Positions 26,594 through 47,810 of a stretch of 64,000 nucleotides of DNA are shown here, in pieces. Both the position numbers and the translations under genes were made by a program. Numbering within the stretch: the stretch's first letter is position 1; the number at the start of each line of letters is the position of its first letter. The stretch spans positions 1 through 64,000 of the forward strand of contig JAHDYR010000014.1 in the NCBI GenBank assembly GCA_019828565.1, read 5' to 3'. The notes under the pieces were generated by a model. It was not told the DNA's origin. It saw only the letters and a list, made by a program, of their open reading frames with translations, and did not search any database. This DNA comes from Carpediemonas membranifera BICM (lineage: Eukaryota; Protista; Fornicata).

Positions 26594-26649
26594 CATGCAG
26601 TCAATTCTGGTACCTTTTCTGGAACAAATGGTTCCAGAATTGGTTCCAG
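26594..26649 (+). repeat. Left TIR (CATGCAGTCAATTCTGGTACC...GGTTCCAG)
   Basis: Exact reverse complement of 47755-47810. Confidence 0.97.
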
Positions 26650-27807
26650 AATGCCAGAAAAAATGGCATTTGCAAGAAAAACTAAACGCGTTCAAACAAT
26701 TTAGCGACGCCTTGCCACGGGGTGTAAAGCAATATGCAACTAATACTGGGCCCAAGGAACGTTGATACGTACTGCTCTCATGAACTCACTCACTTTTCAG
26801 CAGAGCTCGACCAAAAACTAACAGAGGCTTGCCCGAGGTGTGCTTAAGCCAGCTCCAACTCTCTCTCAGTCTGTGACAGCTCCCCCAAAAAATTATTCTT
26901 GCTCAAAGTTGAGGTTTTCGGGAAATACTGCCAAAAAAGTTTGCTTCTGCTCAAGAACGGGGGATGCGCGTTGGATACCGACACCGTTACGTAACAGTTT
27001 AACATTCATTATAACAGCGCTAGCCTCCAGATTTCCTTGCGCACGCCTTTATCTGGAGAAAATAGCACAAACTTTCGCAAGCAAACGCAAATCGATAGAA
27101 AAATATGTTTCATGTCCAACGGAGCTAAAACTGAGCACAGTGTTATTCATCCTTCTATTCTACTAGTTTATCACTTCAAAAGGATCTGAACTTCAGTATT
27201 GATGGTGTTATAGGCACTGGTTCGGTTCGAGTCAAAACTGACTAAACTGTGACGACGGCTAGGTGTTGAAACATGCCATGCTCACTCGTAGCGTGGCGCT
27301 TAATAGTGCCAGAATTGCTTCAAATCAATGGAGGTTCATGTTTGTGCATAAAGTGCACAAACATGAGAAGACACGAATTCGTCACTGAATTACAGACGAT
27401 GCGCAGAAGAATCAAAGATTTGGTTCAAATAGAGGAATACTACCTCTTTGCAGACGATATCGCGAAGGAATACCTTGATGTTGCGTCCATATACCTGATG
27501 AAGGCAATCCTACGTTCTCAGTGAGGCAACTAGCAAACATGAACCGTATCAAGAGACAAATATTGAAGCACTCCCCGTCCACATCATGTTTGGTAAATTT
27601 ACTGGTGTCATTCTGCTGTTAATATCAGACGAGCAAACAACGTAGTGAGATTGAACATGCGGGATGCGGAGAGACCGCGTGCTGCTAGAATACGCAGGGC
27701 ATGATGCGCCCTGTTGATACCAGGAGCGCTGTCCTTAATCGCTGAGCTAACATTGCATTATTTATATATCGCATATATCCGGAGATACCAATTTGGGAAG
27801 AGACAAA

Positions 27808-30408
27808 TCACCTTGGACGCAAGCGGTGACCACCCACCATATGCTCTTCTCTCTCTCGCTGGATGCAGTTCCCACAGATGCATAAGCCCCAGTCCAAACC
27901 ACTGGTTGCCGTCTTAACCGTGATGATCCGCTCCTTCTCATCAATCTGGAACAGGTCCTGCACATTTTGAGTCTCATTTCGTATGCCAGCAACCCAACCA
28001 CAAAAGATATTCTCCAGGGACATCTGACACTCAGCCTCATCCAACTGAGGAGGGCATGATAGAACTCTTGATCGCCATGTAATACAAGCATTTGCATCAA
28101 ACAGACACTTGTGGAAACAGATAGACTTACACTCCACTGCAATATTCTTCACCTGGCCGTGTTTTCTGGTGCTTCCTCGTCTTGTATGACTGGAAATGAT
28201 CCGGTTGATGCTGATCTTCTGGATAATAAAACCCAGAAGCCAAGCGCGATGCTTCTCTTGCCTAACCTGTGCATTCAACAGAAAATCGCGCTCGAAGTAC
28301 TCCTCAAGAAGGAACCTAAGTCCAATACGAAGTTGACTGTGAACTACAGGAAGAACAGACACGACGGCATTCAGGTAGAGAGATCCAGTAAACTTGGGTT
28401 GATATGTCAACCGGTACTCGTCGGAACGAGTCGCCTTGTTCTTATCGCGCTTACTGTGGAGCGTGAGTTGATGGAAGAACATAAACGCTGCAAGGGATGC
28501 TGCATGATGAAATGCGATTGTGGCATCGGTGACGTGATCCGATGAGTAATAAAGGGCCTGAAGCTTTCCAATCAGGAAAATAAATGAGCGAAGGGTGCTG
28601 TCAAATCCATCAATGTGATCATTCACGAGAGTGGCCAGCTTCCGCCGATTCCAACTCTGCTCGTTGCAACCCGTGGTCCTCTTAAAGTCGGCCTCAATCT
28701 TGTCTAATGTGTAAACATTGGAACCTGCACAGCTTTTCTTGATCAATCCAAGGACAATCCAAAGATCCTTCATCAAATAATGGCTTATATGCATGACTGG
28801 CGGAATAAGCAAGGTCCCCGCGAACATTGGCTGGATTTCATGGATACCACTAGACGTCAGGCGACTGAAACAACACATATCGATATTGCGTCCGTCTGCC
28901 TGCCCAAAACGCTGTGTGTCAGGGGTAAGCCCGTTGAAACGCAAGCTGACAGTGTCGCGTAGTGTCAAACGATTACACCTGTCCTTAAATGGATCGGTTG
29001 CGACGTAGAACATGTTAAGAGAGGAGAATGGTGAGCGGTAATAGCCACCCCGCTTCACACCTGAGACAATTTGAAGAGCCTTGTGATCACCGCTAAGACC
29101 AAGGAGTCGCACGATGATTCTACTAGCTGGCCTGTAGTGACTCACGCCAGAAGGAAGCGGCACATCAACCAATGAGCGAAGCAGGCGCTCGATCGTGCCA
29201 AAGAAATCCGGTAAGAACTTCTCAGACCCTTGATACATGAGAAGAGTCATGGGAGGAGTTATTCGCTGTGGTAGAACACACCCTGTCCTGTCAAATAGTC
29301 TGAACTTCACTGCCGTAGCATCAGCTCGATATCCATCAAACCAGACGATCAAATCTATCGTTTGCTCTCTGGAATCATCGGCAACAACAGAGCCCATCAA
29401 AGCCTTTTTGTAAGCCTTAATATCGCGTTCAATCCGTGAAGGATGCTGCAGGCAAAACTTAACAAGCGCGAGTGGGTCATAAGTCACAGATTTGACAACA
29501 ATGCGCTCTTTTCTGGCACAGATATCAACAGCTGAAAACTTCAAATCCGTACAGATCTCCTTTGCCCGACTGAGTGTCTCTGCATTCTCGTGGCAGACGA
29601 ACACTCGACCAGCGCCATTTCCAAGCTTCTCGTGGTGATACACATAGGCGCACTCAAGGTGCTGCAATCTCATGTAGAGATCAGGCAGCCGGGCGCTGTC
29701 ATCTTCATTGTCAGAAACTTTCACAGGTACGTAGAACACATTCGTGACGGAAACTGCCTGTGAGAATCCGGCAGCACAGTTCATCTGCAGTGACTGTGTC
29801 GTAACACCATCATGACCAGTCACATCCTTGTGCTCAGGCGTGAACGCCATCATATCATGGATGAGCGTGGGCGTGCGCTGTAACACACACTTCATTTCAT
29901 CTCTTGAAACTATGTCATATCCCAAGCTATCAAGACTCTGGACAGCAGGTGGTGTATAGGCTTCAAGGGCCGTCCTCAACCCCATGTTATCTGCCAAGTC
30001 AAGGAACACCTTTCTGAGGCGAGAAAACTTATTGATGCCAAGATCGACGGCCAAAATCGTTGACATCGCCTTGTACAGTGGGAGCGCTTCGTCCCTGATA
30101 TCCCTTCGCGTCACACGCACATGATGGTTGCTAGCTCGTTGCGCGTGTAGTTTTTGCCAATCCTCATCAACAATCGCCTTTCGAAGCGGCATTTCTACGC
30201 CCTTTGTCGCTCTAGCTGTACGCGACAAGAACTGAATCAGACAACGCTTGCATTGTTCTTTGGAGTCACAAGTGAAAGCTCCTTGTCTGTTCTTCCGCAA
30301 GAATTCGTCGAGAATTGCTGAAACGATCTCCTTCAAGGTGCTATTGTCCAAGAACTCGATCACAGCGTCATCTGTCACAGTGGATAGTTGAAATGATGCG
30401 TTACTCAT
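27808..30408 (-). CDS. DDE transposase, CMC(Chapaev)/Transib-RAG1-like, 866 aa
   Basis: IVWFDG (D1), LSGDHKALQIVSG..GG (D2), PPVMHI..LMK, EEYFER (E). Order and spacing recall Chapaev3 GDLK..G..GG / PPLHI..GLMK / EEQGER and the RAG1 core. Located next to the left TIR. Confidence 0.72.
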   Translation of the reverse strand: MSNASFQLSTVTDDAVIEFLDNSTLKEIVSAILDEFLRKNRQGAFTCDSKEQCKRCLIQFLSRTARATKGVEMPLRKAIVDEDWQKLHAQRASNHHVRVTRRDIRDEALPLYKAMSTILAVDLGINKFSRLRKVFLDLADNMGLRTALEAYTPPAVQSLDSLGYDIVSRDEMKCVLQRTPTLIHDMMAFTPEHKDVTGHDGVTTQSLQMNCAAGFSQAVSVTNVFYVPVKVSDNEDDSARLPDLYMRLQHLECAYVYHHEKLGNGAGRVFVCHENAETLSRAKEICTDLKFSAVDICARKERIVVKSVTYDPLALVKFCLQHPSRIERDIKAYKKALMGSVVADDSREQTIDLIVWFDGYRADATAVKFRLFDRTGCVLPQRITPPMTLLMYQGSEKFLPDFFGTIERLLRSLVDVPLPSGVSHYRPASRIIVRLLGLSGDHKALQIVSGVKRGGYYRSPFSSLNMFYVATDPFKDRCNRLTLRDTVSLRFNGLTPDTQRFGQADGRNIDMCCFSRLTSSGIHEIQPMFAGTLLIPPVMHISHYLMKDLWIVLGLIKKSCAGSNVYTLDKIEADFKRTTGCNEQSWNRRKLATLVNDHIDGFDSTLRSFIFLIGKLQALYYSSDHVTDATIAFHHAASLAAFMFFHQLTLHSKRDKNKATRSDEYRLTYQPKFTGSLYLNAVVSVLPVVHSQLRIGLRFLLEEYFERDFLLNAQVRQEKHRAWLLGFIIQKISINRIISSHTRRGSTRKHGQVKNIAVECKSICFHKCLFDANACITWRSRVLSCPPQLDEAECQMSLENIFCGWVAGIRNETQNVQDLFQIDEKERIITVKTATSGLDWGLCICGNCIQREREEHMVGGHRLRPR

Positions 30409-47062: not shown

Positions 47063-47754
47063 TTCCGAGAATGTCCAGCGAAAACCAACAATGGGTTGCT
47101 TTTAGGCACCTTGCTTCATTGTACACAATGATAAGACGTGGAAACATCGAGAACCCCAGCGCAAGCATTTCAAAGTTGGAGGCTTCGTGTGTTGAGGCGT
47201 TTGTAACCTTTTGGCTTACAACCAAGGGTGCTGAGACCATCTACACGGAGAGAACTAAGTCTCTTGCCGAGAACTACGGCACAGGTGTTGTCCACTGCTC
47301 TGTTCCGGCAAAGATGACGAGAGATCTCCTCATCAAATATTGAGCGTACAATATCACGTAAAGGGGGCGTTTTGGAGGAAATGACGCACAATACCGTTGC
47401 TTTAGCACTAGTTTGATATTGAAGGTTCACTTTCAAGACTTTTTGCGTGGTCACCTTTGGAAGGTGACAGTGCAACACCCGAAATTTTGTCTATACACGT
47501 CATATACAAGGTCTAATGCATCTTTGCCAACCACTTTTAGCGTTTGTATGTGTCAGACGATCGAGTTCTGAAGAGCGACTTTGGCCAAGTCATGCGACCT
47601 TATCCTGCACTGACGATACGAAAACCGATCATAAATATTTATTGAGACATCTGCATGCAGTATTAATGTGTCCAGAGGTGAAGCTAGGTCTATAGAGTAC
47701 GCACACCAACTTTAGAACTGATCCGCGAGATTCGATCAAAATCGATCAAAGAAA

Positions 47755-47810
47755 CTGGAACCAATTCTGGAACCATTTGTTCCAGAAAAGGTACCAGAAT
47801 TGACTGCATG
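47755..47810 (-). repeat. Right TIR
   Basis: Exact reverse complement of 26594-26649. Confidence 0.97.

Follow-up and report, generated by a model that had tools for sequence, protein, structure and literature searches.

A probable 21-kb cut-and-paste DNA transposon of Carpediemonas membranifera with a transposase of predicted RAG1/Transib-like fold and a SET-like partner gene

The first 64,000 nucleotides of contig JAHDYR010000014.1 from the metamonad Carpediemonas membranifera (assembly GCA_019828565.1), referred to here as the window, include an interval of 21 kb (positions 26594-47810) which is bounded by terminal inverted repeats (TIRs) and interrupts the reverse transcriptase (RT) gene of a retroelement. 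The question that this locus raises is whether the interval moved as a single unit and, if so, what kind of mobile element it represents and how its genes relate to its movement. We hold with good confidence that it is a cut-and-paste DNA transposon of C. membranifera, probably autonomous. Its transposase lineage is absent, by sequence, from Pfam and from solved structures, and it is nearest in fold and hallmarks to the CMCT group of transposons, to which Transib and RAG1 belong.

The evidence for a single insertion comes from the boundaries. The element is 21,217 bp long, and its two 56-nt arms, 100% complementary to each other, are the sole long inverted pair over such a distance in the window. 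The dinucleotide GG lies directly outside both arms. Upon in-silico excision of the element with one GG, an 816-aa RT open reading frame (ORF) is obtained, the junction of which has the same length as that of an uninterrupted paralogous unit near position 17998; this diverged unit aligns gap-free across the insertion site once one GG is removed. A 4-bp CATG target-site duplication (TSD) was conceivable from the CATG...CATG termini and is disfavoured, as it leaves two extra residues at the RT junction with respect to the paralogue. Because both the paralogous unit and the length of the RT ORF match excision with GG, the 2-bp TSD was preferred. Base composition changes at the same places: GC content is 48-55% in the element and 59-67% in the flanking retroelement array, with a sharp fall over both TIR-bearing intervals. 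A prediction made earlier from the bare sequence (the original prediction) had described perfect 56-bp TIRs, a GG duplication splitting an RT in frame and the insertion of the whole interval as one unit with a 2-bp TSD, and all of this was borne out by the complementarity of the arms and the in-frame excision. The recent move that it had also proposed is plausible for the window copy, given the identical TIRs and the intact ORF, although the event is not datable.

We analyzed next the 866-aa ORF located near the left end. It matches a partial C. membranifera gene model at 100% identity and has one paralogue, 50% identical, in that genome (contig 46 lineage). A profile search of 1.84 billion representative proteins yielded only 18 relatives. 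Ten of the 18 were looked up and correspond to C. membranifera paralogues or to NCBI, ENA, Logan and JGI entries; the two relatives traced to contigs are both in assembly GCA_002919055.1 (PPCM01). A metagenome scan with the narrowed transposase alignment returned PPCM01 contigs only, and neither an IMG/VR scan nor a BFVD fold search returned relatives. The family alignment contains the invariant motifs W.DG (D358), GDHKA (D441), PPxMHxS, RTTGCNEQ (E583) and LLEE.FERDF. An AlphaFold (AF2) model built on this alignment (predicted local distance difference test, pLDDT, 76.7; predicted template modelling score, pTM, 0.70) shows a beta1-3/alpha/beta4 core of RNase-H type, with D358 on beta-1 and D441 after beta-4. 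When the model was compared with the PDB by Foldseek, the top 47 matches were RAG1, amphioxus RAG-like (RAGL) and Helicoverpa Transib structures (E 1e-6 to 1e-3), and the P-element transposase came next. The assignment as a DDE transposase made by the original prediction is thus upheld, by fold only. Since E583 is nearly invariant, stands at a helix start and follows in order the His-containing motif, it is most likely the third catalytic residue; E702, E703 and E706 are the alternatives. E962 of RAG1, which we take to be the parallel of E583, likewise comes after a His-containing motif.

Three complete relatives were found besides the window element, two of them in C. membranifera and one in GCA_002919055.1 (Table 1). 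A lack of other TIR-bounded copies would have counted against the original prediction; such copies do exist, and these three elements all lie between flanks other than those of the window. At five unrelated sites (contigs 46, 62, 67, 2 and 37) the left ends show 99-100% identity over 120 bp, and six independent insertion sites were observed in C. membranifera. The termini are CATGCAG in the window, CATGCTG in the five contigs just mentioned and CATACTG in PPCM01, so that all begin with CATRCWG. The TSDs are GG, TG and GC, and restoration of an ORF confirms a length of 2 bp at two sites. The gypsy element and an RCC1 protein of PPCM01 share only 28-32% identity with their C. membranifera counterparts. 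The exact window TIR has no match in metagenome contigs. All insertions examined are inside a retroelement or at most about 2 kb from one, which may reflect either targeting of such sites or survival of the insertions that occur there.

Several of these loci show features of their own. The contig 62 copy (locus L003, 7109-20681) lies in or beside a Ty3/gypsy integrase-chromodomain ORF, and its kinase region harbours a second, nested gypsy element. The contig 46 element (L001, 2097-2652 and 9301-9855) bears a nearly perfect 560-nt inverted duplication, in the arms of which 488 nt are 100% and 71 nt are 99% identical; it includes a 74-nt core that is found five times in the window element. In L018, a left end of contig-46 type at 5077 is located 12 kb from a transposase (17094-18360) only 27% identical to that of the window, an arrangement that could correspond to a chimeric or nested element. 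The traced loci from outside Carpediemonas (L005, L006 and L011-L015) all come from GCA_002919055.1, which is also indexed among metagenome contigs.

The ends of the element carry a repeated 9-mer, TTCTGGWAC. The left end has four of them and the right TIR three, first in direct and then in inverted orientation, with a spacing of about 12 nt. Seven of the eight matches to this sequence in the window are in the two ends, the chance expectation being 0.67. The contig 46 lineage has the same layout with every copy changed to TTCCGGGAC or its complement. Such co-variation of the 9-mers with a transposase that is 50% identical would be the pattern expected of transposase-binding sites.

Comparison of the window element with the contig 46 lineage separates two classes of sequence. 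Identity is 50% (amino acids) for the transposase, 56% (amino acids) for the SET-like protein and 73% (nucleotides) for the terminal 108 nt, versus 96-98% (nucleotides) for the kinase, HEPN-like and OTU-like segments. Gene models on at least seven contigs share this OTU-like domain at 97-100% identity, and one of them adjoins a transposase only 31% identical to that of the window. In PPCM01 elements, with transposases 26% identical, the SET-like homologue is still present (E 7e-9 and 1e-4), and one PPCM01 locus also has PHD-like and kinase genes. The window copy does not carry the PHD-like gene found in other copies. Given this divergence of ends, transposase and SET-like gene as opposed to the near-identical cassettes, we therefore distinguish a co-diverging core from interior cassettes that move between lineages. 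Recombination at a linker is suggested by the sequence, because a repeat of about 0.7 kb recurs five times between cassettes and one module is present in triplicate at 99.8% identity. The cargo kit of the original prediction is thus not a fixed one: the element is a mosaic, in which co-divergence is limited to the ends, the transposase and the SET-like gene, the other cassettes are shared between lineages and one module is triplicated.

Chromatin- and signalling-type genes are carried by the element, in line with the chromatin-type cargo that had been proposed, and the individual assignments differ in strength. The kinase is the clearest (Pfam Pkinase, PF00069, E 7e-23; 81.8 bits versus a cut-off of 31.7 bits) and agrees with the earlier call. 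The SET-like protein alone matches Pfam SET at E 0.11 (model positions 1-104 of 105, below cut-off) and PRDM11 at E 0.33. A profile of four SET-like homologues retrieved almost exclusively SET domains, EHMT1 (E 8e-4) followed by MLL1, G9a and EZH2, and it is by this profile that the predicted SET domain is supported. Its catalytic tyrosine (Y199, in ELxFDY) is invariant. The action of the protein is most likely directed at chromatin or at the transposition machinery. As to the predicted HEPN protein, the RNRAAH motif is present and the Pfam match is weak: the three best matches are all HEPN families (E 0.007-0.08), below cut-off. Residues 271-319 of this protein gave weak PDB matches (E 0.03-1.6), 12 of 13 being to bacterial or organellar ribosomal protein uS12, around TTTPK.P...RKV; the C-terminal tail could be a remnant of an RNA-binding oligonucleotide/oligosaccharide-binding (OB) fold fused to the HEPN-like domain, and it is missing from the truncated third copy. 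The OTU-like assignment stands on its short DGNC...H motif and finds no support in Pfam hidden Markov models (HMMs) or the PDB, where the domain has no match; DGNC and HA..Y are kept in a paralogous domain 30% identical, and the AF2 model was unusable (pLDDT 39.6). The 417-aa and 414-aa proteins have no Pfam or PDB sequence match. Domain scans detected no integrase-like gene inside the element, contrary to what had been predicted; the only tyrosine-recombinase ORF of the window is outside it (13087-15909).

Table 1. Features of the window element and its complete relatives
Feature	Position or length	Strand	Basis or remarks
Left TSD copy, GG	26592-26593	.	Removal of element and one GG restores RT ORF to paralogue length
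Left TIR, 56 nt, starting 5'-CATGCAG	26594-26649	+	Terminus kept in other copies
Right TIR, 56 nt	47755-47810	-	100% complementary to left arm
Right TSD copy, GG	47811-47812	.	In-frame excision; paralogous unit
Interrupted RT ORF, downstream half (insertion target)	25030-26593	-	ORF and domain scan; excision
Interrupted RT ORF, upstream half	47813-48579	-	RVT_1 match; excision
TTCTGGWAC 9-mer, four copies (two direct, two inverted, ~12-nt spacing)	26605-26651	.	Putative transposase-binding sites
Transposase, 866 aa	27808-30408	-	Predicted RNase-H-like DDE core (D358, D441, probably E583); RAG1/Transib-like fold in the model
Linker repeat, ~0.7 kb, copy 1 of 5	30498-31272	.	Between cassettes; 118-aa ORF, no matches
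Linker copies 2-5	32962-33735, 35425-36198, 42176-42924, 45608-46309	.	Repeat search
Two tandem 2.46-kb duplicates (99.8%) of 42196-44619	30544-35431	.	Linker, HEPN-like gene and 5' part of 414-aa gene
HEPN-like protein, 335 aa, copy 1	31195-32202	-	R-x4-H motif (RNRAAH), C-terminal Cys-rich tail; sub-threshold Pfam match
HEPN-like protein, 335 aa, copy 2	33658-34665	-	Identical to copy 1; repeat comparison
HEPN-like protein, copy 3	42960-43853	-	Truncated to 297 aa, altered C-terminus; repeat comparison
OTU-like protein, 475 aa	36356-37783	-	Acidic N-terminal half; C-terminal DGNC...HA..Y (OTU/papain-like); motif only
Unassigned protein, 417 aa	39303-40556	+	3' part 98% identical to contig 46 copy
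Protein kinase, 431 aa, Ser/Thr-type, C-terminal zinc ribbon	40721-42016	+	HCDIK..N and DFG motifs
Unassigned protein, 414 aa	44230-45474	+	5' part duplicated (155-aa ORFs 32579-33046 and 35042-35509)
SET-domain-like protein, 245 aa, core partner gene	46325-47062	-	Profile match to SET domains
Contig 46 element	21,827 bp		Flanks TG/TG; own TIRs 89% alike
Contig 67 element	433346-453424, 20,079 bp		Flanks AA/TA, imperfect; transposase frameshifted near residue 790
PPCM01000946 element	11,629 bp		Flanks GC/GC; excision restores 939-aa Ty3/gypsy pol ORF

To place the family among known transposons, we compared it with the CMCT group (EnSpm/CACTA, Mirage, Chapaev, Transib/RAG1, Plavaka, ESTA and Lanisha), which has CA..TG termini and TSDs of 2-5 bp, is defined by C(2)C and H(3-4)H zinc motifs and includes members, such as ESTA, whose similarity to RAG1 is visible only by profile methods (HHpred; PMC12730594). 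The window family agrees in its 5'-CA..TG-3' termini and in a TSD that falls within 2-5 bp, and the predicted DDE RNase-H fold of its transposase is nearest to RAG1/Transib, a link that, as with ESTA, shows only by structural or profile methods. It differs in that it has no detectable sequence similarity to the HMM of any member, none of the 18 family members matching PF02992 (Transposase_21) at E up to 10, and in that it comes from a metamonad and one environmental assembly. Since termini, TSD range and fold are common to both while zinc motifs and HMM similarity are missing, we would place the family beside, and not inside, the named CMCT lineages. One parallel is the Mirage-type element SmTRC1 of Schistosoma, with a 54-bp TIR containing internal repeats, a 2-bp TSD and insertions into retrotransposons (PMC1636069). 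The window family shares with it the 2-bp TSD, TIRs that measure about 54-56 bp and contain repeated motifs, the retrotransposon insertions and about 80 residues between the two Asp. SmTRC1, however, is 4.5 kb long, with a single Transposase_21 ORF and CCC termini (PMC1636069), whereas the window element, at 21 kb and with about ten genes, has CAT at its termini and does not match Transposase_21.

Transib and RAG1 (PDB 6PQN and 4WWX among others) gave the best structural matches (E 1e-6, template modelling (TM) score up to 0.48, target-normalised) and have the same motif order, namely D, D, a His-containing motif and E on a helix. Transib has a 5-bp TSD and CACWRTG termini; the window family differs from it by its 2-bp TSD and CATRCWG termini, and has neither a sequence match to it nor a RAG2-like partner. 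Tc1/mariner elements duplicate TA, unlike the GG, TG and GC of this family. Regarding the accessory genes, fungal DNA transposons are known to carry TET/JBP dioxygenase genes that have been passed between unrelated transposon lineages (PMC12730594), and the window family resembles them in having a chromatin- or epigenetic-type enzyme gene within a DDE transposon. Here the accessory genes are SET-like, kinase, PHD-like, HEPN-like and OTU-like, and the SET-like gene has diverged together with the transposase rather than passing from lineage to lineage. Ciliate TBE elements, 4 kb long, of Tc1/IS630 type and with a 3-bp target, have a third ORF with zinc-finger and kinase motifs; they are likewise protist DDE transposons with a kinase-like protein, and are not known to have a SET gene or a cassette region. 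No tool annotates the family and no Pfam match exists for its 18 members, which agrees with the undescribed family that had been proposed; literature searches brought up no family like it, and the C. membranifera genome paper makes no mention of transposons.

Four other explanations of the locus have to be weighed against an autonomous transposon of a separate lineage. One is that the element is a very divergent member of a named superfamily (Mirage/CACTA, ESTA, Plavaka or Transib), the missing HMM matches being due to fast evolution in a deep-branching metamonad. The CA..TG termini, the 2-bp TSD, the long repeat-bearing TIR and the insertion into a retroelement do fit both SmTRC1 and the definition of CMCT, the fold is like that of RAG1/Transib, and motif I of Transposase_21 is consistent with the hydrophobic-x-hydrophobic pattern ahead of D-G and with the D-D spacing of 83 residues. 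Yet none of the 18 members matches the Transposase_21, RAG1, Plavaka or KDZ models of Pfam at E up to 10, the family profile does not find RAG1 or Transib among PDB sequences, and the C(2)C/H(3-4)H motifs are missing, so that we consider this origin rather unlikely, although deserving of serious weight. The non-transposase genes might also be passive passengers, taken up from the host as in Pack-MULEs and contributing nothing to the life cycle of the element. Cassettes vary between copies, one module is triplicated, one HEPN-like copy is truncated, the kinase is of generic type and the PHD-like gene is missing from the window copy, all of which would be expected of passengers. What speaks for a role is the SET-like gene, kept alongside 26%-identical transposases in a different genome and diverging in step with them; in addition, OTU-like homologues were met in C. 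membranifera alone, in every case as near-identical genes in multiple copies, at least one of which adjoins a family transposase, and the long ORFs are intact. We judge it unlikely that the accessory genes are mere passengers.

The two remaining explanations concern the nature of the interval itself. The region is highly repetitive, with its tandem RT array and internal repeats of 100% identity, and one might for this reason suspect an error of assembly, or a segmental rearrangement with inverted repeats at its borders by chance; against this, the in-frame excision product agrees with the paralogous unit, like ends and TSDs recur at independent loci and in a second assembly, and GC content drops over both TIR-bearing intervals, all of which makes such an origin extremely improbable. 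The 21-kb size and the multi-gene content would also suit a virus-like or self-synthesising element (Maverick/Polinton or virophage-like) or a Starship-type element with a tyrosine recombinase. Domain scans detected no polymerase, capsid, packaging ATPase or tyrosine recombinase in the element, searches of IMG/VR and BFVD gave no relatives, and an enzyme with a predicted DDE fold is present; moreover, Starships have a tyrosine-recombinase 'captain' at one end, whereas no ORF of the element matches Phage_integrase or DUF3435. We give hardly any credence to this possibility. A bacterial or phage origin was rejected as well: Rfam and tRNA scans were empty, and PHROGs and PADLOC gave only generic kinase matches.

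A number of observations nevertheless weigh against our reading of the locus. Regarding the transposase, the 866-aa protein and 17 relatives have no Pfam match at E up to 10, and the family profile finds nothing among PDB sequences, RAG1 and Transib included; in the family alignment, no C(2)C is conserved after D441, and MHxS[H/F], which amounts to H-x2-H, is partly conserved. The third catalytic residue, probably E583, is inferred only. As for the copies, that on contig 67 (L004 3999 to L017 5139), which is complete, has mismatched AA/TA flanks and a frameshifted transposase, and may be decayed or the product of recombination between two copies. No TIRs were found within 10 kb of five further paralogues (repeat search for L007-L009, end-sequence BLAST for L007-L010). 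The SET-like protein reads NVQC in place of the canonical NH(S/H)C, a motif further changed in the PPCM01 homologues; because of this replacement, the protein may have no catalytic activity. Across genomes, the kinases match weakly (21% identity, E 2e-4). Finally, both the junctions and activity rest on one assembly per genome.

From these data the following mechanism can be proposed for the transposon. The 866-aa enzyme, most likely with D358, D441 and E583 as its catalytic triad, would bind four TTCTGGWAC 9-mers inside each TIR and pair the ends; cleavage would take place at the CA...TG termini, probably by the hairpin route that RAG, Transib and hAT enzymes use, and integration would occur with a 2-nt stagger. 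The ends, the transposase gene by one end and the SET-like gene by the other, with the PHD-like gene too in other copies, would form a co-evolving core. The interior would consist of exchangeable cassettes (kinase, HEPN-like, OTU-like and two unassigned genes), which recombination of one element with another, possibly at the repeated 0.7-kb linker, would reshuffle and multiply. The SET-like protein might either target retroelement-rich chromatin or help the element to evade silencing. The counteraction of host silencing that the original prediction had put forward for the cargo is conjectural, and the SET-like protein does not have the canonical NH(S/H)C motif.

The rest of the window is mainly retroelement sequence. 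Positions 1-26593 and 47811 to about 60000 form a head-to-tail array of about 13 units of 4.2-4.6 kb, belonging to two subfamilies and each carrying an RT ORF and 93-bp tandem repeats. An intact unit contains a single ORF of 1343 aa (6633-10664, minus strand), which has RVT_1 and, C-terminally, a Cys/His and acidic-Lys region. Tandem arrays of elements without long terminal repeats (non-LTR) in Giardia are similar to this one. The tyrosine-recombinase (Phage_integrase) domain mentioned above is in a 940-aa ORF (plus strand) within a longer, 5.6-kb array unit; the ORF may stem from the insertion of a Crypton- or DIRS-like element. At the right edge of the window (60119-63014), GC content goes down to 54%, marking the end of the array, and ordinary-looking host genes are found, an Old-Yellow-Enzyme-type flavin mononucleotide (FMN) oxidoreductase and an RCC1-repeat protein. 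In L009 (16183-21075), a gene adjoining an RVT_1 ORF has a weak match to Dam-type adenine methyltransferases; it fits the theme of a 2026 preprint on retrotransposons with prokaryotic adenine methyltransferases, in which C. membranifera is mentioned.

More tentatively, and well aware that this proposal may prove too broad, we suggest that the element could be the founding example of a superfamily-level eukaryotic DDE lineage, structurally allied to RAG1/Transib and seen to date in a metamonad and one environmental eukaryote assembly, with its own co-evolving SET-like (and PHD-like) chromatin factor and interior kinase, HEPN-like and OTU-like cassettes exchanged between lineages. If this is true, the accessory genes of this eukaryotic transposon would form a modular pool open to sharing. 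Little has been catalogued of the DNA transposons of metamonads, and in the C. membranifera genome at least a dozen models labelled 'hypothetical protein' are transposon genes. A lineage tied to RAG1/Transib by structure prediction alone widens the diversity around the ancestors of V(D)J recombination, the family being a distant outgroup of RAG1/Transib without zinc motifs. The accessory genes may act on chromatin, with the fungal TET/JBP-carrying transposons as a parallel, and the SET-like partner diverging in step with the transposase, together with the shared cassettes, would offer a testable case of how transposons acquire, keep and trade accessory genes.

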